Assembly (NCBI RefSeq): GCF_040938485.1
Contig: NW_027271431.1
Location: 2,852,001-2,916,000, forward strand
Source of the DNA: Diadema antillarum
Taxonomy: Eukaryota
DNA length: 64,000 bases
Reading direction: 5' to 3'
The translations under genes and the position numbers were made by a program. Below, piece by piece: positions 10,621-64,000 of the stretch. Each line of letters opens with the position of its first letter. The stretch's first letter is position 1. The notes below the pieces were generated by a model that ran no database searches, was not told the DNA's origin, and saw only the letters and a list, made by a program, of their open reading frames with translations.

Positions 10621-11323
10621 TTGATAAAATGTTTATCATGTAAGTCCTTGATAAAAGAAGGACTTTGAAATGTTGACATGTCGTCATAAAACAATGTTAT
10701 TAGTCGCAACCACATACCCAATAAGGTATATGTCTCCAATTATTATTAAATGACTAAAATATATTGCATGAGATCGAACAGAAGAAGGTCTCCTTTGCAT
10801 CAAAATATTGTTGTGTTGTGACAGTTGTTGTGTTTATGAAAAATGGGGCCCTACGCCAAAAAATAATTTGCCCCAGACAATACTGGCATCAAATCAGACG
10901 ATAAACAGCTCAAACATTATTCTTATTACATTAAAGACTTTTTGCTAAAATGTCTCCACGAGGGAGCTCATAATCAATGCCTCCACGTGAGAAGCTCATC
11001 CATGATAATGTTAATTATTTCGATGATAATTGATAATTGTGAAAATAATCATGTCTCTTCGAGGGAACTCTTATGAAAGGAAAGGAAGGTATAAGACTAT
11101 AAAGATATGGATCAAAGAGGAGGAAAAAAAAAGAAATAAAAAAAGGTAGTGTCCCCACGCAGGAGCTCGTATCCCTAGTACTAACATTAAATAAGATTGT
11201 GAAATGGTCTCACACACAGACTAAATGCGATTGTGTTGTCACCTAAAAGCCACAAAACAATAATTTCAGGGGTAAAGGGGTCCGGACGGTGCATGTTGTT
11301 ACTAAATTCCTGACAAAACCATT

Positions 11324-21700: not shown

Positions 21701-24700
21701 TTGGTCTTTCCATAATAACTCTTGATCAGTGATTGATGTACCCAGGTACTTCAAACTTTTAACTATCTCCATACTTCTTCTTTTAGATTGATTGGCTTTA
21801 CTTAACCTTTGCTTGACCAAAAAACAACAATCATCTCTTACATTTTGGCTGTATTTGGCTGTATTTAATACCAGAAGCAGTGTTGTCAGCATATTTGACA
21901 ATGGTAGCATCGTCATGAGATGAAGTGAAGTCATTTGTTAAAATGATGAACAACAGAACTGGCAGTACGCAACCCTGTATGGGTAGTTACATAATCGGAA
22001 AACATATCCTGTAGTTCTACTATTTGGGTTCTACCCAAAAAAAAAAGAAGAAAAAAAAAAAGAAAAAGAAAAGAAAAGAAATCGTAAGGCCAGAGAATTA
22101 AGGTCTAAAGGAGGGCTTAACATACACGCATGTAGGAGTATTTGTGTGACCAGTATGCCTGGGGGCCTAGATCGTAAAGTGTAAATTAATGAGTTCAATC
22201 ACAGGACATTCTGTAAGAAAAAAAAAATGATATAATCCTTGTGATTTGTACAAGTAAAATTAATTAAAGTTATATTTCCTGGTAACTAGCCCTACCAGCA
22301 TTTTAAGTTCACTGGCTTTGATCAGCACAGGTCTCTTACGTATCAATTGGAAAACTGCTCAAAATGAATAAAGTAAAAATGTCCAGTGGAATATACATGC
22401 AGTTGACATGCATGTCTCACAAATATAATATGAGCTGATGTAGGGGATTTACATGTATACCCACAAACGGTCAGGGATGTATTTTGCAGAAATTCTGAGA
22501 AGTCTCATGTGATATTCCCTTTTTCCAAGAGAGCTGCCCATTGTAAACACATGCTTGTGTCTTTGTGTGGACTGTGCAGTTGCAAAATGATGAAATTGAT
22601 GTCCCGTTCCCATCATGAAAGTTTGGGACTGGAGTCACAATGGCAGTCCAAATGTTGTGAAAATTCAATGAGAATCCTGGCTAATAGAAAAGTGTGATAA
22701 TGCACAAACCTCTAGCTGCACTGTTTGTATGACATCAGCTACTACTCGCTGTCGCCCTTCATGTGTACATTGTATGTCTACAAATAGCACACTTTTGTGT
22801 CTATTCTACTTTCCCTTTACCCATCTATTGCCTGTCATTAATTCACATGACATAGAATGGTTGTACAGGAGTAGGGCCATCACTTCTGTGGATTATTATA
22901 GATATCCTTCAAATGACATGATTTTATAGCCCATCATCGCCTGATAATGGGATTCTTTGGACATTCCGCACGGCACAACATTGGGATGTTGGACTATCTT
23001 TGTCCGAGGTTGCTCATTCCACACTTTTGCCTACCCACGACTTGGAAGTACATGTTTATGTCTCATGGAATCTGGCAGTAGTTGTTATAACCATTTAGGT
23101 ACTGATATGGCAAAAGATCTAAATACCAGTTGCACCATCTTATACTCTAGATGGCAGATGACAGCAAGATGTATTTTGTGGTCTTATAATCACCTGGCAT
23201 GTAGGCCCCAGGGAGTCAGGCAGACAGAGAAGTGCTTCTGTACTTACGTCCTTCTAGTCTGGAAATCATCATGATGACCCTCATTGATACTCAAACAAAA
23301 CCAATCTGTAGGTTGTTGAATATTGCAGCTGTGATGCCTTAGGTCCTCCTGGGTCTGTCTCTTCTTGCATATCCATGGATGATCTCCCACAGGCATCAAC
23401 TGTCAGTCCCAACTATGTCATTTAGATGCAGTACTCATGGTGGCCAAGCTGCAGTATGTAATGAATCAAAACACATTGCTGGTCAATCACCTTTTCATCA
23501 CTCGAGTTGTTATTCACCATAGATTTGATAAACAGGCTACCACTTATCCCCCTTTCTACCCTCTAACTCCTCTGCCAGGCATCTTACCAAGGATGGAATC
23601 GAGAGATGTAAGGAGGGTGCCGCCACCGTCTCAGTGGATGCCCTAACAAGGAAGGCACTTGATGTAAGTTTTCCCCTGTAACGTATTTGTCCTATTACAT
23701 GTATTGTGCTTTCATGGTTAAAAAAGCAAATTTCTTCATAAGAAGGACATCCTGCAAGTGAAGGAGGTGTATAGAAAAAAGTTTTAAAACATTTTGGAAA
23801 TTTATTTCGTGTTTTTGCTTGTATGAAATCCTTAACTGTCTTGCGGTCTTTTTTTTGTAGAGCATGATGAGACATTGGAAGACTTTGAAACAACAGTCAA
23901 TTGTCAATTCTTGCTATGAGTTGATATTCTGTTTAGTAAATTTGGAGATTTTAACACTTGCTGAAGGTTTACTCATTTATCTTCATTTAGTTTCCATTTC
24001 AGCATATTCTTCGCACAATCACTCTTCTCCTTTAAAAAAAAAAAAAAAGATTGTCTTACGTGATACATCTTGTTATATTTTTGCAGATTGATTTGAAGCA
24101 GATTGGTTCCAATGCTCTGCCTCCAGACATTGGGAAGAGCAAGTCAGACAAGGTAAGGTACTTTCTCTCACAGCAAGTGTGTCATCGCTAGGGTGGATGC
24201 ATGTTCAGTTGTAACTATTGGTGGTGGTTTGAGGAGAGATAGACTGATTGATGAATAGTTAAGAAGCATGCTACACCATTTGCATGTCTATTCATAAGAA
24301 ATGTGAGATTCTAGGGTTTGTGATGTCTTGGATATTCAGACTAAAAGATCATGGAGAGAGAGAGAAAAACAAAACAAAATTGTCAGTGGTTAGGCTGCTT
24401 GGTTTCAGTATTGCTATTTGTGATCTCCGAAATTTCCACCAGTACATTGAAATTTGGAGTCGAGTTGAAAAAAAAAAGAAGTATTATATTTGTTGTGAAT
24501 ATACGGAACAATTAAGATATACTCCTTGTTCAGTTGAATTGATATGTAATGTCAAGACAATCACAATTCAGTGAGGTGTGTGTCTAGCAGTCAAATAATG
24601 TTCTGTATGTTGTGAGTTGTGAGCACAATAAATTGCTGCCCTGATATAAAGATAATTTCTCATAATGTTGAAGATATTTACAGAAGTAGGGGTTCCGTGA

Positions 24701-46700: not shown

Positions 46701-49700
46701 CAACGGCAGAGAACATGAAAAACTCCGAGTATGGTTTGGGGCAAGTTTAACAAGGACTGTCAGGTTTCAAAGATCACAAAAAGCTCCTATAAGGAATGTG
46801 AGTACTGTAAAACGAGGAATTTTCGCGTGCATTTTAATTTCGCGAATTTCGCGAGTGCCAAAATTCGCGAAATTAAAATGCACGCGAAAGCTTTTGTCTA
46901 CACTACATACACTGAATGCCAGAAGCAATTCGCGAAAATTTCATGCCACGAAAAAGGCTGTCGGCTCCAATTCGCGAAAATTTCATGCCGCGAATATATC
47001 ATGTTTTACAGTACACAGAAACAAATCAAAAGTCTCAAGCTTAGAGGTGGTGTAGAACCACAGTGACCCATCAGTTGGACAGAATGTGATGTCTAAATTG
47101 CATACCAGAAATAGAAGACACAAAAAGTGACTGTAATAGATCAAAATATTGTACAAATGCACAAAACAATTATACAAACTCACATATGACAAAAGACATT
47201 CAGCAGACAAAATTTCATCTCCAAATACGCTGTATACTAGAATACTAGCATGGCCTCGCCCTTTGAGGAAAACTCCCCAAGAGATGCAGTCTGATTGGAG
47301 GTCCTGATTCTTGTCTCCCATATAATAGCAGATTTACAGAATGGTCAGGTAAGAATCAAAACTAGCTGGACAATAACAGGTGACTCACCATATATGTAGC
47401 AAATGTTTGTAAAGGAGGATAAAGACAAAACAAACCTCCTATAAAGAGTTCCACCCCGCCCGCCTCGGAGATCGCCTTCTCGTAGTTCAGACATTCTTCA
47501 TCCAGGTCCTTGGCGTTGCCGTCAGGGATGTGGACATTCTCGGGCAGGATGTCAATGTGCTTGAAGAAGTGGTCCCACATGAAGGAGTGGTAGCTCTCAG
47601 GGTGGTCTCGAGGCAAGCCTGTGGATGATAATACCACCACTCAAAAGTCTGATTATCGACAGATATCAAGCTTTGCTTACCACATAGAGGATATTTCAGT
47701 AGTTTCCTCTGTATTTCTTTGGAGGGTATAAGCTGTTCAAACACATACACACAAAGAATAATTGATTAAAAGATTTGAATTTTTCTGTTCAATTTTCATC
47801 TTTTATGATGAATTCAAGTAGAAACACAGGTCATACTCTGTCATGTACTTGCTCATAAACATTTATGCTGACATCACATATCTATAAATTATACAATCTT
47901 TATCTTCCATGGCAATGTTTTATGCTCGCAAATGCATACATTTTGAATGATTTGCAATTAACTTTGACACACATTTGTGCAATTCTTCAATGGGATTGAT
48001 TTTGCATGTAGGCATTCAAAAAATGAAACCTCTAAATTGACATCTTACTGACAAAATCATGAATCTAATGACATGCAAGTACTCACCTACATACTCGTCC
48101 ATGTTGAAAGTTTTCACATATCGGAAAGACAGCGCCCCCCCTTTGTGGAATTCAATCAGCTTCTTGTACATTCCAATGGGAGTGCTGCCTAAAGGGGCAA
48201 AGGGATTTTTTAATGTTTCTTTAGTAGGGCCTATTCTTTATATGGAAATACATAAACATACACACTCTCAACACAGTCAGTATGATGCAGATTCAAGAAA
48301 ATTGACAAGAATTTTCAGTAATTTTGTGAGGTAAGCAAATAAAGAAAACAGTGAAGGAGCTGAATTGGCCATATTTCTACAGCTGTAATTTGAGACACTG
48401 ACAGAGTGCCAATAGGTCATAACTAATCACTCATGGTCTTATTCCACACACTGACGGAGTGCCACAGAAGTGTAGTTTATTGACAAGAGGTCACAACTCA
48501 CCACTTATGGTCATATTTTACACAATTACATAAAAGGCTGCTTGTTCTGCAGGATGGGTTCCAGTCAAAACAATTTACTCTCTGGGGATGATTCTGTTTA
48601 ATAATTTAACAAATTTCTGTTTCTTAAATCATGATGACTTCACATGTCTTAAAGTTTCAGCTTAATTTGTCTTCTATCTTATAACATCTCATTCACTGTA
48701 GCATAGAAATGAATACAATTATAATTCCAAACAAGGAAAAGTAGAAATTACGCGGTGCGTAAAATATGTCCCCGCCGGAAGTAGCATTTAGTATCAAAGT
48801 GTACTATATAGGTCAAAAGATCAAGGTCAAAGGTCAAAGAAGTCAAAGGTCAACATTCTGTGTAGAAGTTTTGAAGCCCTCACCTAGTGCCATCACATAA
48901 AGCAAACGGCATCGAAATCGGGTTAGAAATGGTGAAGGAGTAGCATTTTGTAGCAAAATGTACAATACAGGTCAAAAAATCAAGGTCAAAGGTCAAAGAA
49001 GTCAAAGGTCAAAATTCTGTGTAGAAGTGTTGAAGCCCTCACCTAGTGCCATCACATAAAGCAAACGGAATCGAAATCGGGTTAGAAATGGCGAAGGAGT
49101 AGCATTTTGTAGCAAAATGTACAATATAGGTCAAAAAATCAAGGTCAAAGGTCAAAGAAGTCAAAGGTCAAAATTCTGTGTAGAAGTGTTGAAGCCCTCA
49201 CCTAGTGCCATCACATAAAACAAACGGAATCGAAATCGGGTTAGAAATGACGAAGGAGTAGCATTTTGTAGCAAAATGTACAATACAGGTCAAAAATCAA
49301 GGTCAAAGGTCAAAATTCTGTGTAGAAGTTTTGAAGCCCTCACCTAGTGCCATCACATAAAGCAAATGGAATCGAAATCGGGTTAGAAATGGCGAAGGAG
49401 TAGCATTTTGTAGCAAAATGTACAATATAGGTCAAAGGTCAAGGTCAAAGGTCACGACTGAAATTCTGTGTAGAAGTTTCAAAGCTCCCATGTAGTGCTA
49501 TCATATAAAGCAAACAGAATCAAAATTGGCTCATAAATGACAGAGAAGTAGCAAATTGAAGATTTCGATCACACATGGACGCACACACGGACGCACACAC
49601 GGACGGACGGACGGACGGACGGACGGACACACGGACACACACACGTACGGAGCCCGTTTCATAGTCCCCTGCTCGAACTCGTTCGGCGGGGACAATTAAA

Positions 49701-50903: not shown

Positions 50904-51633
50904 TTAAAGTGCAATGTTGATACATCTCACAACATGAAAAAGTTGGATAATGAACTAATTTGCCCATCTCATTGTGAAACACAATTACAACATATATCAT
51001 CTCAAGATAACTTTAAGGAGCAGCTGACACTAGGTATTTCTGTAAAATTCCATGGCTGCAGGTTGTGAGGAGAGATCAGACATGTAAACTTATATTCTTT
51101 ATTGAAGAGATTGAGATTGACAGTCATAGACAGACATTTGCAAATTGACCAAGAGTAAAATACACCCAGTTAGCATGCCAGCAGGGTGCCTATTTCTGGC
51201 AGGGGCACTTTCATTCATCAACAGCTATTAAATGAACATCATGTGTGCTTAGTCCCACTTAAGAACACAAGCAGGAGTTACTCGCAAGTGTTAGGGGAAG
51301 CAACACCTGATCTGATTGGGCCTTTAAATCGAATGAATGAAATGCCCTGCCGCAAAAAGGCACCCTGTGCAAAGCCTGCTGCAAACAGAGTGTTTTACTC
51401 TATTCAAGTCAGTATAAACTTACAATATTCTCTCCTTGATTATCTCTAAAAAGGCTGTTAAGATGAAAAAAATAATCCTCTCAATAAGAGAAAAACATTG
51501 CAGCATTAAAATGAATTTTAGGGTGTTTAGTGGGGAAACAATATGTGGCTTGTGTTACATGAATTATTTCACTATCAGAGAATAGACTAGACCCCTAACA
51601 GTTAATGGTTAGTTTAGCAAGGGTTAGTTAGCA

Positions 51634-51928
51634 TTATAAGATGGCCAAGTAATTTCCAGCTTGCTGATTGGTCAAAGCGTACCACGTGATCATTCGCGAA
51701 AAGTGTCTATCCCTGCACGCCCGTGGGATTTTCGCGCACCCAAATTGTCTAATCCACAGTTACTTAGTATTCGGCACAAGCTGGGATAATCTCGGAGAAA
51801 GCCTACTCTGGACCATTTTCCAACGGTAAGTACAATTTCAAAATCTTTGATATTTGATTTATTTCATTATTTCTTTCTCATACAAGGTATATTCACCTCG
51901 CGTTTGAAATTACTTAGCCATCTCATAA
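51634..51928. mobile_element. MITE with 22-bp TIR
   Basis: TATAAGATGGCCAAGTAATTTC vs reverse complement TATGAGATGGCTAAGTAATTTC (20/22). Confidence 0.75.
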
Positions 51929-52106
51929 AAGGAATAACGCATTTTCCCGTCGTTGTTCAGAGATATGCAGTGCACTCGAGGTTTCTTCTTTGCATGCACA
52001 CTCCACACTCGCCTCTGCTCTGGCTCGTGTGGAGTGCGCATGCTCAGAAGAAACCTCTTGTGCACTGCATACTCCCTAAACAACTCCGCGGAATGCGTTA
52101 TTCCTA
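51929..52106. mobile_element. Foldback MITE (almost entirely palindromic)
   Basis: AGGAATAACGCATT/AATGCGTTATTCCT, TATGCAGTGCAC/GTGCACTGCATA, GAGGTTTCTTCT/AGAAGAAACCTC and CACTCCACAC/GTGTGGAGTG nested inverted pairs. Confidence 0.75.
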
Positions 52107-52304
52107 TATTAATTTATATACAAATTAGATCCTTTACCATTGACATTGTTTAAAACAGGAAATGAGCACGATGAGCAATATGATGAGTGTAGATGACATA
52201 CACATACTTTTTCTATAGCCTAAATTAAATGTTTACACTAGCCAATATATGACTACGAAAGTACTTCCAGGCACTACTTAGTACACCACCGGTACCACCG
52301 GTAC

Positions 52305-54770
52305 CTTTGATTACACACCTCCCTGAGTGTGCCTTATATAATTTGTTACGAATTTTCAATCTTATTTGGAAAACATCTGTGCTGCCACAAGGATGGACCC
52401 ATTCAATCATCAACCCAATTCTGAAACAAGACTCAGACCCATCAAAACCCTCGTCATACAGACCAATATCTCTGACTTCGGTGATGTGTAAGTTGATGGA
52501 ACGTATGATTAATAACAGATTGTTGTGGATAATAGAGAAATATCAGTTATTATCCCCTAATCAGTTTGGTTTTAGAAGTCATAGAAGCACAATGGACGCG
52601 ATCGTTAGTTTAGAAAATGATGTACATAAAGGTTTGGTAAATAAGGAATATGTTATATCTTGTTTTTTGGATTTTGAAAAAGCTTATGATGTGTTGTACA
52701 GAGAAGCAATTATTTATAAGATGCAAAAGATGGGTTTCCGTGGAAGAATTATTACATGGATACATAGTTTTTTGAATAACAGAACAATTCAAGTTAAGCT
52801 TAACAACGTTTTGTCTGATACATTTGTGTCTGACTATGGTTTACCTCAAGGCAGTGTTATCAGCCCGACATTATTCAACATAATGCTGAGTGATTTGAAT
52901 GATGGACTAAACAAGGTTAATGCCTCCTTGTACGCTGATGATGTAGTGATATGGTGTGTAAATAAAAATTTTGATTTTTGTGTGAAGAAAGTTCAAACAG
53001 CTCTTGATTTTATATCTGAATGGTGCCATAATTGGGGCATGATATTATCAACGAAGAAGTCATGTGCTGTTGTATTTAGCAACAGAAGAATACCAAAGGC
53101 ATGTATTAGATTAGGTACTGAGCCCATGGAAGTTAAAAAGGAGTTTAGATATCTCGGTGTGTGGTTTGATTATAAGTTAACCTGGCAGAGTAATATAGAA
53201 TCAATTATAACAAGATATAAGAAAAGAATGAATTTGCTGAGGAGTTTAGCTGGCACTGACTGGGGAGCTGATACAGCAACTTTACTTGTAGTTTACAGAG
53301 CACTTATTCGATCTATTTTGGATTATGGGTGTATTGTATATGACTCAGCCCCTAAATATCAAAAGGATAGATTACAATCAATTCAATATCAATGTTTGAA
53401 GATCATCACAGGAGCCGCTGTAACTACCTCAACTGATGCACTCCAAATAGAGTGTAGGGAGATGCCCCTGGATTTACGAAGGCAATATTTTACTGATTCA
53501 TTTAAATTCCACATTCAAGCGCAAAATGCGAATCATCCTTTGAAATCACTCCTGTTACCTTGCTGGCAATACGAAACATGTCACTGGAAAGCTGGCAGAG
53601 AACCAGTTGCAATGAGATTCACTACTTTAGATGAAAGCATTGAACATTCTAACAGTTGTATTAGAGGTATTCCTTTTTGGCACTTGGTTGCACCACATAT
53701 TTCTTATTATATTAAGAAAAGAATAGCCAATAAGAAAGATGTTAATGAGTATGATTTGCGAGAGATGATGTTAGAGTATATCAATAATGAAAGGAAAAAT
53801 TTTTTAACGATTTATACAGATGGTTCTTCCAAACAAGAGAATAAAGTATCTTCTTCTGCTTTTTATGTACCACAATATAAATATGGTAAAGCGTTCCGGA
53901 TCCCTCCCGTTTCAGTATACAGATCGGAACTCATAGCCATCCTAATGGCCCTGGAATGGTTAGAAGTGAACCATATAATCCAAACACCTGTGTTGATCTT
54001 AACTGATTCTTTATCTGCATTACAGGCGATAGAACATCGAGATTCTTCTTCTGTTGTTTTTGAAATTCTGTGCAAAATTACACATTTATATAGAAAAGGC
54101 ACAAATTTGTTTTTTGAGTGGGTCCCCTCTCATTGTGGAATATCAGGTAATGAGAGAGCTGATACTCTTGCCAAATCAGGACTCGCACACCAAGAAGTTG
54201 ATTTGCAAGTCTCTTATACGGTGACAGAATTACGTGGTTATATGCTGAATTTTTACACCGGGATCTGGTGTACGAGATGGGAAAATTCACAACATGGAAG
54301 GCATCTTTATACCATTCAGCCTACACCATATACGAAATTTAAATCATTCTGTAAAAACAGAAAAGACGAATGTGTATTACATCGATTAAGACTTGGAAAA
54401 TGTAGGCTTAATTATTATTTGTGTAAAATAGGAAAACACGATAATGGACAATGTGATACTTGTAAAGAACAAGAGACTATCTCTCATGTTCTGATGTATT
54501 GTAAAGAATACTCCAGAGAACGAAAGTTTTTATGCAAACGTCTAAAGATATCATCTGATGCTCTCACATTACAACATTTGCTCCAAAATGACGAACTCCG
54601 CCAAGAATGTGTTTTATTCTTTTTGAAATCCACGGGCATATATGCCAGAATATGATTTTTTTTTTCTTTCAAGAAACATATTTATCGGGGACTGATGTGT
54701 CAAGTCTCATTTCATCTCCTCTGTGTTCTTTTCTCTTATTTTCTTATTTCTACCTAATGAGAAGATAATC
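52305..54770 (+). mobile_element. 5'-truncated I-group LINE (I/Nimb/Ingi-like) with uninterrupted 782-codon ORF2 fragment: RT + RNase H + CCHC knuckle
   Basis: ORF 52307-54655: [30 protein letters not shown]; RNase H IYTDGS / ELIAILMAL / LTDSLSAL / WVPSHCGISGNERADTLAK; CDTCKEQETISHVLMYC. 3' boundary approximate. Confidence 0.93.
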
Positions 54771-54826
54771 AGGAGGAATAGTATATAACGTAACATCATT
54801 GATGCACAGCACAGCACTGCACTTAC

Positions 54827-55420
54827 CCGCTATTGGGCTTGTCTGTTTGTATTTTGTGTTTAGAATTATAGCTAGGTAATATGTTTTGTATTGCATGGTG
54901 TATACAAATCGGGAAACTGTATCGCAAAATAATGTGTTGGGTGGAGCGCCCTCGTTGCAAATGAGTGGTCTAGGTCATGCGCGATCGGCTGAGAAGCCTG
55001 CTCAACATTACCGAGCCGGGCTGACCAGATTTTGCGAGCCTTTTACGAGGTGCTTTTCTCTATCTCAACCTTTATGCGTACAGATTGCTCCCCGCGCTTA
55101 ATTATAATCATGATTATTATTTTACTTATATTACAATGGAATTATTATTCTTTCCGTTGTCGAAAAATGAGTGTGAATTTCTTTTATATATGAGATAAAA
55201 GGCGTAAATATTCAATATTGAATGACGCGCCTTTAAGCACCAACAACAACAAACAACAAGTTGGCACAACGTAGTGGTAGTGACTGGGGCCAGCAATGAA
55301 GGGGCGCAGCGATGCATACTGTGGCCGACTGACTTACATTTTGCCACAGCCTAGCACCACTTCAATTCAGCTTCCTTGTTTGGCGATGTACACGTGGGAC
55401 TATGACTCAGGAGCAGGATT
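54827..55420 (-). other. Candidate non-coding first exon(s) of GNPDA (donors AGCGG|GTAAGT at 54827 and AAAAT|GTAAGT at 55337; acceptor CATCACAG|ACC at 50360)
   Basis: The ATG exon has an acceptor 11 nt upstream of the start codon, so an upstream UTR exon is implied. Two perfect GTAAGT donors lie next to the CpG-rich region. Confidence 0.55.
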
Positions 55421-55835: not shown

Positions 55836-58800
55836 ATGAACATGACTTTCTGGACCCTAGATGGATCAAGTACATGGCAAGAAGACGATCTTTCAAATGA
55901 GCTGCATGATGCCTTGTTCAAGGTTAAAGAATCTACCCAGGTATGAAAGCAACACAACAGTGATTTCAGCTCAGTCCCATCCCTTAAAGATAATGTCTTG
56001 CTCGTTTTTATAACTGCGTCCACATGTATCAACATACTATCTGATCTAGAACTATCAAAATAATGATGGTAGGCCGGGCTGCGGCTAATTAATAACAATG
56101 AAAAAAAAATCTGGCATTTATATGACAGACATGGTGACAGGTCGCCGTCGTTTAGGATCACCAAATCCCCCCCCCCCCCCCCCTGCAGTGAATACGGCTT
56201 TGCAAAAATTGTAGAAAATTGTGTTCATGTGTAAATATACCAGTAAATTTATGGTACAATAGCAATACCACTGCAAATGTGTCTTTCTAGTTTGAGAAGT
56301 GTAACTTTTGTGGGCTTGTGTGTGATGTGTATAGTCCTACATTCATTGTATGTGATGTAAAGTAATTTATGCTTTGAACCTGTCTTGGATGTGTAAACTT
56401 ACACTCTGAAATTTATTGAGAGATAGACCAATATATGCCAGAAATAAAATGCTGGAAAAAAACCAAGGCTGTACTTGTGTCCCACATAACAAAGGTTTGC
56501 TCTTTGTCTTCAGTAAGTTCAGTACAAACCACAGTATGTCAACAGCTAAAGTGATATTAAATCTGGCATTGTCACAGTCATACATATTACTTGGAACTTT
56601 AAACTACACAAAAGTACCTTAAAATGTAAATTTACATTTTCCATCACTAATGAATATCCTTTCATATCCATGTAGGCTAGCTATCTCAAATTATACTAGA
56701 CCAAATTATGCAAAAATCCCGGGAAATACTATATGGCTAATTTTCGATCAGTCATGTAAATTTAAACCAAATTGGTTGTCCAGAAGTATTGACATCAATG
56801 TCACATTTCATGTCATTGCTCAAAACAACTCCCTCTTTGTGAACAATCACGGTGTATGCTGCCTGCACAATCTAAAACTGAAGTTAGCCATCTTATATTA
56901 TGGGATGTATCTTTTGTGTGACCAAAAGCTAAAAAAACAATGTAGTGCCTACCAATGTCTTGGTGCATCTTTTGGGCATGCAGAATTTGAAATATCTACA
57001 TGGCTACAAAAGTAATATAGGCACATACCTTTACATTCTAGATCAACAGACCGAAAATATCAAACAACAGATTCTATCTTGAAATCTAGTGTTGAAAAAG
57101 ACATCGAAAAAAAAAATGGTTCACTTAAATGGAAAAAAAATAAAAATCTTGTCAAAGTAGAGCCTGTGATCATGTGAGGATGAATTATTTAAAACATTAT
57201 TGTACTTTCTGGTCAGTTGCTATGCAGTTCAATATGCTGAAGAGTTCATTCTTTGCCTTTCTTTACACAGGTCAATAGAAATCAGAAAAAGAAAAAGAAG
57301 AAGAGAAAGGTTGAGACGCAGACTGCTGAGGACCTGGCACCATCACCAGATGATAGGGGTACGCAACAAGAGGATAAGTCTTTGAGTCAAAATATTAAAA
57401 GCAGTAAGAAACAGAAAAAGAAGAGGAACTTGGGAGAGATGGGTGCCTCAGAGAAAGTTAGCAAACGGGACAAAGCATCTCCTGGCTCAAAGGAGAGCTT
57501 TCCAAGCACCACCAATCAAGATTTGTGGAGTGTCAAAGATGGGGAGATAATTACTTTGCTAAAGGAGCCAAGCACGATAACAAAGAATACTGAGACCAGT
57601 CTCAAACAAAATACACATGAAAAAACCCCAGAGCAGAAGCAAGTGAAGAAGAAACGAAAGAGGAAAGCAAGAAAAAATAAATTCAGGGTTGAATCAGAAC
57701 AGGTGGGGAAAAGTGATTGTGGAGATGAGGAAAAATTTAAAGCAAGTGAAGTTCAGCCTCAAAATGGACTGCATTCAGAGGCTAATAATGCCTCCACAGA
57801 TTCAAACCCCAGTCTGTCTAGAAAAGAGAGGAGAAAGTTGAAGAGAAAACTGGCAAAACAGCATCTTCAGGACCAAAACCCAGAGAGTGGAACCCCAAGT
57901 AAAAAGATGAAGAGAACTAGCGACGAGCTAGAGGTAAAACCACCCTCTCAGCATGAAGAAAAAGTTGTCAACAAGGATGAGGATTCCAAAAGCAATGAAG
58001 TAGAAAGTGACAGTGGTGGCGGACTTATCTTGGTGAAGTCAAAAAAGTCTTTAAACTTGAAGTCCAGTCTGAAAACAGAGATGGAATCCCAGTTGAAGTC
58101 GTCCCAGTTCCGTCTCCTGAATGAACATCTGTACAAAGTGACTGGTAAGGAGGCTAAGCAGCTGTTTGCTGGTGACAAGGCTGCTTTTGTCACCTACCAT
58201 GAAGGCTTCACCCAGCAGGTCGAGCAGTGGCCAGTCAACCCGGTCGATGTTATCATAGAGGTGTTGAAGAGGAGGTGAGTGGTCGGTTTTTGTGTCTTGA
58301 TAATTGCATGACATCTGGAATGTATGAACCATGAAATGTACATTGTGCCTAAAAACAGCTTGAAAATCAGTTTGTTGAACTTTTTAGTACACCAGCTTCA
58401 AATGGGGCAAACTGTTGAATATATATATAATATAATATATATATAAGCGTATGACCTAAAAATGTTTAATATTCCTTATTAACACAGTGTGTTGTCTTAT
58501 AGCACAAAAAGATTACTACAGTACTTATAGTTAGAAACAATGTTGTTGTAAGAAATTGTGGCAGTCATTCTGTGATATTTTATCTGGAACTAGCAATTCA
58601 TTATACAATACCTGAATTCCTTAACTTATAATAATATAATGGATATATTAGATGAACTAAATTTTAAAATCAAACATACAACTTTATTGTGGTAGTGGCA
58701 AATCTTACAAACGTCATAACCACAATTACGTTCGAATTGAAATAACTTACGAACAAAATGAATTTGTTTTGTTGTTGTTGTTGTTGCATAACTTTTGATC

Positions 58801-61308
58801 TTGATTTGAAAATTTCTTTCACTCTTGTAATTCATTATGCATGATCTAATGTATTGACTTCATATTTTTCTGGTTAATTTAATCCTTGTGTCTACAGACC
58901 AGCATCACAAGTGGTAGGTGACTTTGGATGTGGAGATGCCAAGATTGCTCGCTCTGTCAGGCAGAAAGTTCATTCATTTGACCTTTACCCTATCAACAAA
59001 CATGTGACTGTCTGTAATATTGCCAAGGTAATTACCAGCAATTTCCTCTAAAGAGTTCTTCAGTTGTTCACTGTGTATGCTGTCAGGGGATTAGTTTAAA
59101 TTCTCTTAGTCACCATCATTTAGCCCAGTATAATTTTGTACAGTATTTAGTTGTTCTAAAGCATTTTTTTTAAAACCACCTGATAGTATTACCATGTACT
59201 GAGAAAAATTGGAGGGCCCACCTGTTACTGTACTGCAGGCTTACATTGCATTACCTCAGATTAAATCTCTGTTTTTGGGAGGGAAGTGGTTTTTTGTGGG
59301 ATTAATTCAACCAGAATGGGCTGAAATGTGTTGTCATAGTAATTCTAAAGAGGAAAATGTAGTGTTAATTTATGTTCAAGTCATTGGGAAAACTTTTACA
59401 GTGATGACATCATCACCTCTAATTTGCATACATGTCGGCAATGGATATTACTGTTTTGTGAAAACAAGTGCATCTTTAAATTCCCCGAACAGCCTTGTTT
59501 GTATCGGTTTCATTTTACTCTGTGTATTCAAGTCAACTGTAACATGAAGTGTATTTATACTTTGATTGCCCATGTATCAAGACCTAAATATTGGTAAAAG
59601 TTTAACACCCCAACATGCACTCAAACATTAGATTACTTTTGAATGAAACTTTGATATGGAATGTGTGAATTTCTTTCCCTGTGCCATTGACTGTGATTCA
59701 TAGAGTTTGAATGCTGATATAAATTGCTGTAACAGGTTCCACTGAAGCCAAGCACCCTGGATGTGGCAATCTTCTGTCTCTCTCTGATGGGTACGGACTG
59801 GATTGACTTTGTGATGGAAGCCAACAGAACACTCAAACAAGGGTAGGTACCTTACAAAGTGTTTTCTTTTAGTTTGCATTTCCAACTGACATTTCACTGC
59901 ACAAGTCAGAGAGATATTTCTATATATTTTTTTTTTTATTGCTAGTAGCCATTTCTTATAATAGAAACATTCCACATCATGGTGTTTGAAGTACTAGACA
60001 TATATACACAATGACCCTTATTACGGGAATCAAACCTAAACCTTCAGTGCAGGAACTGCATTCCCTATGGGGCATACAACCAGACCTCTTCTGGAGCAAA
60101 TATGCCAAATCTAACCACAGTAACATTCATTTTTTTTTTCTGGGTGCACTTTCCACTCATAGTCATATAGATATATGTATAAGCTGTCTTAACTTATGGA
60201 CAGAAATGCAATGGCAGGGATTGAACCCTTGACTTGGTTTGTTTGTTTGGTTTTTACTAAAAGCACAGTAGTGCACAAACCATTAGTCCAACACACTTTC
60301 AGAGTGCTGTTTTTATTCACTCTACAATATATCATTATGATTTGTTACCATGTGTGCACCTGGTACAGGAGCTGTAAGATGACAAGTTATGGTTAAGAAG
60401 ATATGTATGACAAAAGGACTACCCTAGATGACCTTTAACCTTTCTTTTCAGTGGTCTCCTAAAAGTGGCAGAAGTAGCCAGCCGCTTCACCTCACTGGCC
60501 TCCTTCTTGTCTGTGATGAAGACCCTGGGCTTCCATCTCAAGTCAAAGGTAAGGAGAATCATTCAATGTCATTTACAATCTGTTTAGCTTCCTCTCCATA
60601 TTCCTCGTTACCAGGGCATAGAGCTGGTTCTCCATGTGGACCTGTTTCATAAAATGGGCACTTGCCATTTTACCTTGCATTACTTGCAGCTACCATAGCA
60701 GCAATCAAAATCTTCACAGATGGTCCGATATTAATTGTCACTTACTGCTGCAGAAACTAATCACTGAAGGTTGGAAATGCCACAAGGACAGTAGATGAGA
60801 AGAGAAGTTTAACGGTATTAAAAAAAAGTTCCTTATCAATGGCCATGTACATAGTTGTCATGATTTGAAAAGAGCCGATATCTGTTTGCACAAGAAGTAA
60901 CAGCCCTCTCAAGTCTGTCATTTCTATGTCTTTTGTTTTGAAGACACATTAAAGAAAATAAACTTTTAGTTAGTTCAGGTAGGCAGAATCTCTATGCTTC
61001 TCTTGGAGTCAGCAGAGCCTTCCAGAGAGGTCTACCATGTCATATACCAGGTATTTGAGATTTGGTAAAGGACTCCTTTGCCCCTCAAGAAAGAGCTATT
61101 TGAATTTTTGTTGACTGTAAATTGTACTGTATGTACTTTATACAGTGGAACATTTATGGATTAAGGATTCTTTATGTCGATTTTAATTCCACAGGACCTC
61201 TCCAACAAGGTGTTTTACCTCTTTGACTTCAAGAAGAGACATGCTCCAACTTCAGCACCTTTACCCAAAGGTGTCATCTTGAAACCCTGCCTATACAAGA
61301 AGAGATAG
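55836..61308 (+). CDS. RRP8: Ribosomal RNA-processing protein 8 / nucleomethylin (25S/28S rRNA m1A methyltransferase), ~518 aa. Exons: 55836-55940, 57271-58274, 58898-59027, 59736-59842, 60452-60548, 61195-61308
   Basis: Lys-rich N-terminus, [32 protein letters not shown] motif [31 protein letters not shown], terminal LKPCLYKKR*. Phases consistent. Exon 1 (ATG 55836 or 55842) is less certain than the rest. Confidence 0.95.
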
Positions 61309-62250
61309 CAAAGGTGTCATTGTGGAGCTCTGCCTATACAAGAAGATGTAGCAAACATGTCATCTTGAAACCTTTGCCTGTACAAGAAGAGATAGCAAAG
61401 ATGTCATCGTGGAAGAAGATAATTTGATAGCAAAGGTGTCATCTTGAAACCTTTGCCTATTTTGTACAAGAAGAGATAGCAAAGGTGTCGTCATGGTACC
61501 CTGCCTGTTCAAGATGAGACGCCAAATGTGTTATCTTGGTACCCTGCCTGTATAGGAAGAAACACCAATGTGTTGTTTTGAAACCTTGCCTGTACAGTAA
61601 GAGATAGCAAAGGTGTCATCTTGGTACTGTGCCTGTACAAGAACAATTCCCGGTATTGCCGATGCGCAGAAAACTTCTGTGCACACTGAAGAGCCCTGTC
61701 ACAGATGCACTATGGGATTCCTCGGTGCCATTGTCGCTTCCGGTTATCTCGCGCGCGTTGCAGTTCCCATACTATTCAATGGAGTTATTTGTGTGCTTTT
61801 ACGTTGATACTCCTTTTTTCTTGGCTATAATTCAGCTTTAAAAGAATTGAAATTTTCTAAATTTTACTGATTTGTGGTCACTAGAGTCATGGTTCACTAC
61901 TGCAAGGCTTCAATGTGCTGGTCACATGAGGGAAAGCAAAGAAATCTTCAACAAACAATACCCCTGGATAAAGACAGAACGTGACCTGAGTGCATATGCA
62001 GCCAAAACCGGGGCAAGTTTGTCCCCAGAGCTATCCCATAATGCATCTAAAATGCTGCTCTGCGCACGGCACCAAGGTATTGGCGATACCGAGAATTGCA
62101 AAGGTGTCATCTTTGTACTCTGTCTATACAAGAACAAATAGCAGAGGCAGAATATTGGTACCCTGCTTGTACAAGAAGAAACAGCAAATGTGTCACCTTG
62201 ATACTCTTCCCTTTCAAGAAGACAAAGTAAATGTGTCATCATATGTGCTG
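61266..62250 (+). repeat. 43-bp minisatellite derived from the last 14 codons and stop of RRP8 (12 full or near-full copies + 1 partial)
   Basis: Consensus CAAAGGTGTCATCTTGAAACCCTGCCTATACAAGAAGAGATAG; unit starts 61266, 61309, 61352, 61396, 61431, 61480, 61523, 61566, 61608, 62099, 62142, 62185, 62228. Confidence 0.92.
61649..62093. mobile_element. 445-bp MITE with AATT TSD (Sola1-like) inserted in the RRP8 minisatellite
   Basis: AATT|CCCGGTATTGCCGAT ... ATTGGCGATACCGAG|AATT; subterminal inverted AGATGCA(C/T)TATGGGAT. Removing it restores a 42-bp repeat unit. Confidence 0.75.
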
Positions 62251-62750
62251 TGGTGTCTCTTGTTTTCTTTATGAAGTTTTTGACTGCATAGCCACCTCCA
62301 AATGTGAGATGTCCTTTTCAAATTACAGCTTGCCAAAAGGAATACAAGCAGATGAAAACAAACTTTGAGCTATAAAAATCACGTCTGTGTTTTAAATCTT
62401 GTTATTTTTGCCTTTTCGTCTGCTTCCAACAATCAACTCAAGTATTTTGATGAAAAATGGCAGCACCATAGTTGATCCCTGTTAAATACATGGACACAAA
62501 ATAACTCAGACATTCAGTCCATGATGTGAGGTTCTTTTATTGGATGCTTTAATGATCGGCTTGCATGAGTGTTCTTACGTGCAACAGAGGGCCTTCGTTA
62601 CTTCTGTAAATGACGTAATGTGACTGACCTACTAATTGTCGTCTGCTATAGTCTGCATACATTTTAATCCCAAAGTGAAACACGCTCAGTCCAGCCTAGA
62701 ACGTCTTCCTGTGTGGTGAATGAGTCCTGCCATTCAAGGTATGATCTTAA

Positions 62751-62835
62751 CCCATTGAGGATGGGCTAATTTTGCTACAACACACATTCTCCATAGACAC
62801 CTGCCCGAGTGTACTCGGGACTCGCCTTCAACGGG
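62751..62835. mobile_element. 85-bp piggyBac-like micro-MITE
   Basis: TTAA|CCCATTGAGG ... CCTTCAACGGG|TTAA, with internal hairpin CCCGAGT-GT-ACTCGGG. Confidence 0.75.
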
Positions 62836-64000
62836 TTAACGCTCTTGTTTTCTAAAACCTAATGTCCTACACATTCTGATGGCAACCGGGAAATGAAACA
62901 TACTACAATCGAAAAAAAGAAATCTCTTTATCTTAAGGTTACTGGAAGATACCATAGGCATATGAACAAATGACAGCAAGTTGACTACCATGGAGTCACA
63001 CTGTCCTGGAAAGTACACAAGATGGCATAACGAATATGAACATTTTCAATTTTTAAGATTAACTATCCTATTGCTAAATGAATAAACTGAGTATTCATCC
63101 TGAGTTACGAGTAGTTGAGTAGTTTCAATGCAAGTTTAGAAATACATGTTTATAAAGTTGCCTCAGGAAATACTCTGACACAAACATGCTCTATGACTTC
63201 CACATCTTTCATTGGAGCTAAAGGACTGTCTGCAGTCCTACCTACAGGGTTCCATGTTAGCGAGATTTCATTATAACAGTAACATATTTTCGTTCCCGAG
63301 TATTTCATTTGTTGATGTTTATCTGAATTGTTTTCTATCTTGTGTAATTTATGACCCTGCTAGAGGTCCACCACGATTATTGTGTTCTTGTCTACACAAG
63401 CTGAATGCATGCTTCCTACAGGTCTTTTGTTTTTAGCATGCTTATTATCTGTTCATGTGTAGAAGTCAATGGAGCATTCTGACATTTTTAGATTTGAATA
63501 CAATGCCATGTCTTTTGATAATTTTACTTGCAAAATAGATTCTAAAAAATGAAGTTTGTATTACTTCTTTATTTCTGTAATCATATTGAATACAGCTTAC
63601 AGTGTACTATTTGGAGGAAAATACATTTTAAGCAATCCTGTCTTTTATCCACAGTGTGAAATGTTTTATTTTATACATATGAGTATATTTGAAATATAAA
63701 ATGATTTGTCAAAGGCATCATTAGAAGTTGAAACTCGGTCTGTCTAAAAGTGTCCTTGAAATCATAGAGGGGAATGAAACCCAAATATACATGTGGATTG
63801 GGTGAATGCAGCAATATCAGTAAAACACAATAGTGAAAGAATGTGGAAAATCAGACAAACTACATGTAATGAAAAAATAAGAATGTTAAAGTTTTGGTGC
63901 AGCCATCACTGCATCAAAGCTAGAAAAGTGAATAATAGGATGGATTTTTTTCATATTTTTTCCATACACAATGTCAGAAAGTGTTGTAGCCTTCTCATCC

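Follow-up and report, generated by a model that had tools for sequence, protein, structure and literature searches.

The 'mirage' minisatellites of amphioxus are tandem duplications that span exon-intron boundaries in the Adh3 and globin genes and leave splicing undisturbed (PMC3087553). Haplotypes differ in the length of these unstable arrays (6 vs. 3 units in BflGb6), whose units share 81-100% identity (PMC3087553). Here, we describe an array of 43-bp units that starts in the coding end of the RRP8 gene of the sea urchin Diadema antillarum. The array is located in a stretch of 64,000 nucleotides (RefSeq assembly GCF_040938485.1, contig NW_027271431.1, positions 2,852,001 to 2,916,000 of the forward strand), which we call the window. 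An earlier reading of this window, made from the letters alone and referred to below as the sequence-only reading, had considered four explanations for the array: swapping of alternative C-termini onto the enzyme, a variable number tandem repeat (VNTR) in the 3' untranslated region (3'-UTR), a multiplied RNA element and, as null hypothesis, neutral slippage. Our data indicate that the array very probably goes back to a neutral tandem duplication across the RRP8 stop codon and that it is now an old and largely frozen minisatellite. A literature search yielded no paper combining RRP8 with tandem repeats in sea urchins, and nothing specific was found on minisatellites, stop codons and tandem duplication.

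The array in two haplotypes and two species

Tandem Repeats Finder (TRF) reported a repeat with a period of 43 bp at 61266-61643 of the window (8.8 copies, score 214), and a repeat search of the window located three further units and a partial one at 62099-62244. When the array was parsed, 12 units of 35-49 nt were obtained (43, 43, 44, 35, 49, 43, 43, 42, 42, 43, 43 and 43 nt in this order), which are followed by a degenerate unit 13. Thus, 12 of the 13 copies counted from the letters alone are recognizable, but only some 15 nt of the thirteenth are. Nearly half of the previously proposed extent (61266-62250) is a 445-bp transposon with terminal inverted repeats (TIRs; 61649-62093), which the sequence-only reading had not recognized. 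Unit 1 consists of one base, 13 codons and TAG and represents the authentic coding end of RRP8. TRF, unit parse and translation agree with the sequence-only reading on this point, and its five variant tail peptides were all reproduced exactly for 43-nt units. Its count of seven terminal TAG triplets was also correct (units 1, 2, 3, 4, 5, 8 and 10). The lengths of four of the 11 complete downstream units (44, 35, 42 and 42 nt) break the reading frame. Since the units are arranged head-to-tail, fall into the size range of 10-100 bp and were detected beyond chance by TRF in both Diadema species investigated here, the array is a minisatellite.

The RRP8 protein ends with KPCLYKKR in the window and the corresponding D. 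antillarum database protein (P0001) stops at the first TAG. We retrieved 144 RRP8 homologues, which came from animals, fungi, plants and protists, and 121 of them have a PCxYKxR motif within three residues of the protein end. The C-terminus is therefore conserved, as had been stated in the sequence-only reading, and the D. antillarum protein carries this motif at its end. The last 13 residues are identical in both D. antillarum haplotypes and in Diadema setosum.

Two other origins of the array were considered and rejected. The unit does not belong to a dispersed repeat family, since searching the D. antillarum genome gave matches only at the window locus and at its allele. A larger original duplication, which would have included the intron end and the whole last exon, was suggested by the likeness of 61168-61194 to 62265-62291, but this likeness was matched by 119 of 1000 shuffles. 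A further copy of the non-repetitive part of the last exon was detected downstream neither in D. antillarum nor in D. setosum. There are five other tandem arrays with scores of at least 100 in the 64-kb window. Minisatellites are frequent in the D. antillarum genome and it is therefore not improbable that, genome-wide, one of them starts in a coding end.

The D. antillarum assembly comprises 1.75 Gb in 2963 contigs and according to its published description this version is uncollapsed, so that both haplotypes of a diploid genome of roughly 0.7-0.9 Gb have been kept. When we searched this assembly with the array, a second copy was found on contig C1011 only (380 vs. 381 nt, 96% identical). About 15 kb of this contig align colinearly with the window (92-96% identity) and the differences are transposon insertions. 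Because of this colinearity and of the uncollapsed state of the assembly, we read C1011 as the other allele of the locus (haplotype 2). Haplotype 2 also has 13 units and carries the 445-bp transposon. Within the array, 15 substitutions and a single 1-nt indel separate the two haplotypes (3.0%), and for the flank 5.9-8.2% were calculated. As a separate observation, window positions 59916-62031 are 96.4% identical to C1011 190399-192518 and the flanking blocks only about 92%; this low-divergence block is local and reaches from the last RRP8 intron through last exon and array into the transposon.

In the chromosome-level assembly of D. setosum, the orthologous locus (L020) contains the array directly after the stop codon, for which TRF reported 13.3 copies (score 322) and the unit parse 14 units. 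In contrast to the two Diadema species, the coding end is single-copy in the camarodont urchins Strongylocentrotus purpuratus and Lytechinus pictus, and no tandem repeat was found there. Since the array is common to both Diadema species and absent from the two camarodonts, it arose on the diadematoid side, after the camarodont split and before the two Diadema species separated. These findings also bear on the possibility that the array is an assembly artefact, which the sequence-only reading had kept in mind. An uncollapsed assembly could in principle disturb repeats, but we found no other support for this idea. Independent assembly gave the array on both haplotype contigs and again in a second species, with units that correspond one by one, and thus it is not an artefact. 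Translation of the downstream copies by readthrough or frameshifting is similarly hard to reconcile with the sequences, since the 43-nt period shifts the frame past the stop codon, where it is closed after about 19 codons and broken by indels between the species. We consider the chance that either an artefact or such translation accounts for the array as almost negligible.

Comparison of the units indicates that the array is old. Units 1, 2 and 6-13 of D. antillarum each have a single counterpart in D. setosum (units 1, 2 and 7-14, respectively), with 86-98% identity for the full units and 69% for the degenerate unit 13. Units 4 and 5 have diagnostic indels in common with D. setosum units 4 and 5/6. 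The mean identity of the units within D. antillarum is 75% and that of orthologous units between the species 92%, which corresponds to Jukes-Cantor distances of 0.30 and 0.08 substitutions per site. Assuming equal neutral rates and lack of conversion, the relative age of the amplification would be some three to four times that of the species split. Because units within the species are only about 75% alike and orthologous units about 92%, the array is old and largely frozen. Turnover since the species split was small and concerned the proximal units only, with a net copy number of 13 vs. 14. D. setosum units 5 and 6 represent a recent duplication (97% identical). D. antillarum unit 3 is 91% identical to the coding unit and only 75% to D. 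setosum unit 3, and unit 5 (86-88% to the coding unit) is also closer to the coding unit than to its positional counterpart in D. setosum. The resemblance of unit 3 implies at least one replacement or conversion involving a unit-1-like sequence, and judging from the identities such exchange is possible for both proximal units 3 and 5.

Tests for constraint in the array and its 3' flank

Coding constraint was restricted to the first unit. The differences between units 2-13 and unit 1 are evenly distributed over the three codon positions (28/33/34), and the interspecies differences of the orthologous downstream units amount to 4/12/10 (chi-square p = 0.14). Unit 1 differs from its D. setosum counterpart at three positions, all of which are synonymous third positions, and this pattern shows purifying selection on unit 1 only. 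A terminal TAG was retained in 6 of the 12 downstream units, which ranks 25th among 41 trinucleotide windows and does not exceed the simulation (P = 0.87). Hence, neither the codon-position bias nor the excess of TAG triplets over neutral expectation, which had been proposed as signs of function, was observed.

These data have to be considered together with the idea that the array serves as a reservoir of alternative C-termini and as a hypervariable VNTR, in which unit 1 recombines with downstream units by unequal crossover. Several downstream units do read as variant tails of 13-14 residues, and the proximity of units 3 and 5 to the coding unit as well as the recent duplication in D. setosum indicate some exchange or re-duplication. 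However, the enzyme has the same end in both haplotypes and in the sister species, and the downstream units show no coding constraint and are partly out of frame. Moreover, PCxYKxR is nearly invariant across eukaryotes, so that variant tails are probably selected against, and homologous misalignment is poorly supported at 75% identity between units. As to length variation, both haplotypes, which are two alleles of one individual, have 13 units, and the species differ by one unit. Swapping of C-termini and a 3' VNTR are both disfavoured by these results, and a reservoir of this kind appears highly improbable to us.

Next to the coding properties, we quantified the divergence between D. antillarum and D. 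setosum along the locus. For units 2-13, substitutions in the MAFFT alignment amounted to 11.1%. The distal units 6-13 contributed 9.0% with few indels and the proximal units 2-5 15.3% plus large indels; with BLAST, 8.7-10.3% were obtained for the array. The next 0.5 kb of flank diverged by 7.7-8.4% and the distal flank by 12.3-14.1%. Four of five intron segments gave values of 11.8-14.0%, whereas the segment next to exon 5 gave 5.4%, and 4.4% were determined for the last RRP8 exon. Hence, conservation of the array does not exceed that of the adjacent non-repetitive DNA.

Downstream of the array, a single AATAAA is shared by the two haplotypes and D. setosum (Table 1). If this candidate poly(A) signal is used, the array would lie inside an RRP8 3'-UTR of about 1.8 kb. 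Directly 3' of the array there is a single-copy block of strong conservation. Its positions 62263-62348 (86 nt) do not differ among the two haplotypes and D. setosum, and between haplotype 1 and D. setosum the exact match extends over 88 nt. Within 20 kb, only one exact match between the two species is longer, and the conservation of the block equals that of coding exons. In S. purpuratus and L. pictus only noise-level matches to this block were obtained, Rfam gave no match and folding gave no signal (z = -0.5 and -0.3 for the two strands). The block may be a constrained 3'-UTR element or an unannotated exon.

The array is interrupted in unit 9 by the 445-bp transposon, which is flanked by AATT target-site duplications at 61645-61648 and 62094-62097 and has TIRs of about 15-20 nt. 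At least 897 candidate copies (88-93% identity) are present in the D. antillarum genome, and all 11 copies examined (the array copy and ten others) are flanked by AATT or by a one-base variant of it (GATT, TATT), which suggests that this family uses a 4-bp AATT target-site duplication. The element lacks a long open reading frame and the orthologous site of D. setosum is empty, reading ...GAACAATTGCAAAGG.... With these properties it is a non-autonomous TIR transposon resembling miniature inverted-repeat transposable elements (MITEs). It is present in the array of both D. antillarum haplotypes and inserted in the D. antillarum lineage after the split from D. setosum. In haplotype 2 we observed an additional TIR element of about 3.57 kb nested in the MITE (L019 2515-6085; C1011 ~192515-196085). 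This element has the ends CAGGGTTCG... and ...CGACCCCTG and an apparent 5-bp target-site duplication (CAGAG), and no open reading frame of at least 100 amino acids spans it. It is absent from haplotype 1 and thus represents an insertion polymorphism within the presumed RRP8 3'-UTR.

If the array were a functional 3'-UTR module, a cis-acting RNA element overlapping the stop codon, such as a binding site for a protein or a small RNA, would have been multiplied and its dosage would tune mRNA stability or translation. Such a module would be in line with a recognizable unit order older than the D. antillarum/D. setosum split, with the 9.0% divergence and few indels of the distal units, with the position of the sole conserved poly(A) signal downstream of the array and with the conserved block next to it. 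However, the array diverges at least as much as the adjacent non-repetitive flank (11.1% vs. 8.4%), and among the units, which are about 75% alike, no sub-motif stands out beyond shared ancestry. Rfam yielded no match for 60500-64000 at E-values up to 1 and a unit dimer showed no fold signal (z = +1.2). Both haplotypes tolerate the MITE and one of them the nested element within the array, and camarodont urchins do without the array altogether. The multiplied RNA element considered in the sequence-only reading thus finds no support, since the array diverges like neighbouring non-coding DNA, and we regard a functional module as improbable.

Several observations weigh against a purely neutral history. 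With ~9-11%, the array diverges slightly less than the introns do on average (~12.5%). This looks regional rather than array-specific, since the non-repetitive 0.5 kb downstream is lower still (~8%). All six units of exactly 43 nt lack premature stops, which has a probability of P = 0.05 under a uniform substitution model. Under the observed transition bias this value rises to P = 0.13-0.22, which is not significant, because every stop-creating change in the unit is a transversion. An ordered array of 13-14 units that has persisted since before the species split could also indicate maintenance. Finally, the conserved 86-88 nt block abuts the array and some element of the 3' region is thus constrained. 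The array might persist in the RRP8 mRNAs of Diadema as a cis element of tunable dosage derived from the stop-overlapping sequence, perhaps jointly with the conserved block, or rare exchanges with unit 1 might supply selectable variant tails; we consider this quite unlikely. Taken together, neutral slippage is favoured over the other explanations, and what we found among the copies is essentially neutral decay.

The RRP8 gene and its surroundings

Each RRP8 exon was used for a search of its own, and for the spliced product we relied on the database protein P0001 (516 amino acids). The product of exon 2 is 100% identical to P0001, and when the full-length protein was used in tblastn it mapped onto all six exons of the window. 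Together with the splice signals, these matches define six coding exons (Table 1). The translations of five of them are colinear with the Pfam family PF05148 (Methyltransf_8, RRP8 family), and on the basis of these alignments the gene is assigned to this family. The D. setosum orthologue (P0002) shares 86% identity with the product of the long exon in a protein comparison, and the homologue of S. purpuratus is annotated as 'ribosomal RNA-processing protein 8-like'. The contigs for two further proteins (P0003 and P0006) carry the large exon only. A search with the C-terminal half of P0001 retrieved no Diadema transcript fragments, the top match being 58% identical, and an exact look-up of P0001 gave no hit either.

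Table 1. Features of the RRP8 locus (window positions)
Feature	Position	Strand	Evidence
RRP8 coding exon 1, start codon at 55842	55842-55940	+	tblastn with P0001; GT donor at 55941
RRP8 coding exon 2, encoding the lysine-rich N-terminal region and the beginning of the methyltransferase domain	57271-58274	+	PF05148 2-70; tblastn with P0001
RRP8 coding exon 3	58898-59027	+	PF05148 70-116; tblastn with P0001
RRP8 coding exon 4	59736-59842	+	PF05148 115-151; tblastn with P0001
RRP8 coding exon 5	60452-60548	+	PF05148 151-183; tblastn with P0001
RRP8 last coding exon, stop codon TAG at 61306-61308	61195-61308	+	Translation; PF05148 184-219 of 219; tblastn with P0001
Unit 1, true coding end	61266-61308	+	Unit parse; interspecies comparison
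Units 2-8 (43, 44, 35, 49, 43, 43, 42 nt) and the first 41 of 42 nt of unit 9, decayed non-coding copies	61309-61648	+	TRF; repeat search; unit parse
MITE-like non-autonomous TIR transposon in unit 9 (445 bp)	61649-62093		TIRs; target-site duplications; copy number; empty site in D. setosum
Units 10-12 (43 nt each), preceded by the last base of unit 9	62098-62227	+	Repeat search; unit parse
Partial degenerate unit 13, passing into the original downstream sequence	62228-62262	+	Unit parse; unit comparison
Single-copy conserved block adjoining the array	62263-62350		Exact-match comparison; own-genome search
Candidate poly(A) signal, sole AATAAA common to the three sequences (both haplotypes, D. 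setosum)	63081-63086	+	Three-sequence comparison

Upstream of RRP8, an open reading frame of 800 amino acids (52253-54652, plus strand) encodes reverse transcriptase (PF00078) and RNase H (PF00075) domains. It belongs to a non-LTR-type retrotransposon, which lies within ~51600-55260 between the upstream gene and RRP8. This block of about 3.6 kb is missing in haplotype 2, where window positions 51594-55265 correspond to C1011 184533-184718. Further upstream, a 159/142-bp tandem array with many GGTCAAA motifs was found at 48780-49553. In D. setosum, the intron preceding the last RRP8 exon has an insertion of about 1.1 kb full of short repeats of the GGTCAAA type (L020 19557-20148), and both may belong to one repeat family.

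Proposed origin and comparison with known systems

The following scenario would explain the array. In a Diadema ancestor, a 43-bp segment comprising the last 13 RRP8 codons, the stop codon and one adjoining base was probably duplicated in tandem, starting inside the last exon and ending one base past the stop. The first copy would have kept the complete C-terminus and its stop, leaving the protein unchanged and any later copies beyond translation, and because of this the duplication was presumably tolerated and selectively invisible. Had a 43-bp duplication been confined to the coding sequence, the reading frame would have been shifted. Slippage or unequal exchange may then have expanded the array to about 13 units, after which the downstream copies would have changed mainly by point mutations and small indels, at a rate like that of neutral DNA nearby. 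As the units diverged to about 75% identity, misalignment would have become rare and the array would have frozen. Later turnover was confined to the proximal units, and the MITE entered unit 9 in the D. antillarum lineage.

The array is thus an ordinary minisatellite of unusual origin. It provides a dated example of a tandem duplication that arose from a highly conserved coding end and that was harmless because it carried the stop codon along, and it shows how a minisatellite freezes as its units diverge. For annotation it calls for caution, since the downstream decoy ends look like alternative C-termini. Unit order, MITE insertion and the unit duplication of D. setosum are possible phylogenetic markers in Diadematidae. 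The array alone reveals no new RRP8 biology.

A copy of terminal coding sequence downstream of the RRP8 stop codon was also observed in camarodont urchins, where a decayed duplicate of the whole last exon is located at ~23696-23800 in S. purpuratus (L023) and at ~10731-10850 in L. pictus (L024). Located about 620-660 nt past the real stop codon, this duplicate includes the polypyrimidine tract, the AG acceptor and the start of the 3'-UTR, and its reading frame is broken by deletions. In S. purpuratus it shares about 79% identity with the real exon. A homologue of it was not found in Diadema. As in the array, terminal coding sequence has been copied past the stop codon and has then decayed, but this was an independent event, which left a single dispersed whole-exon copy with its splice acceptor and no 43-bp tandem.

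With ordinary minisatellites of 3'-UTRs and intergenic regions, including VNTRs, the RRP8 array has in common the head-to-tail arrangement, presumably produced by slippage or unequal exchange, and the gradual decay with occasional duplication of units. It differs from them in that its unit stems from the host gene itself, namely from the conserved coding end with the stop codon, and from VNTRs in lacking length polymorphism in the two available haplotypes.

Among named classes, the amphioxus mirages come closest to the array. Both structures are minisatellite-like and are built from a coding boundary of the gene itself, and in both the authentic copy forms the terminal unit, which is still used by the gene with its product unaffected. 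Both contain decoy signals (splice sites in mirages, stop codons in RRP8) that leave expression undisturbed, and both show homogenization among some units and none at the array ends. The RRP8 unit, however, spans no exon-intron boundary, the feature that defines mirages; the duplicated boundary is the stop codon with its 3' flank in the last exon. In contrast to the length-unstable mirages, the RRP8 array has the same number of units in two haplotypes, 13 vs. 14 units between species and a unit identity of about 75%.

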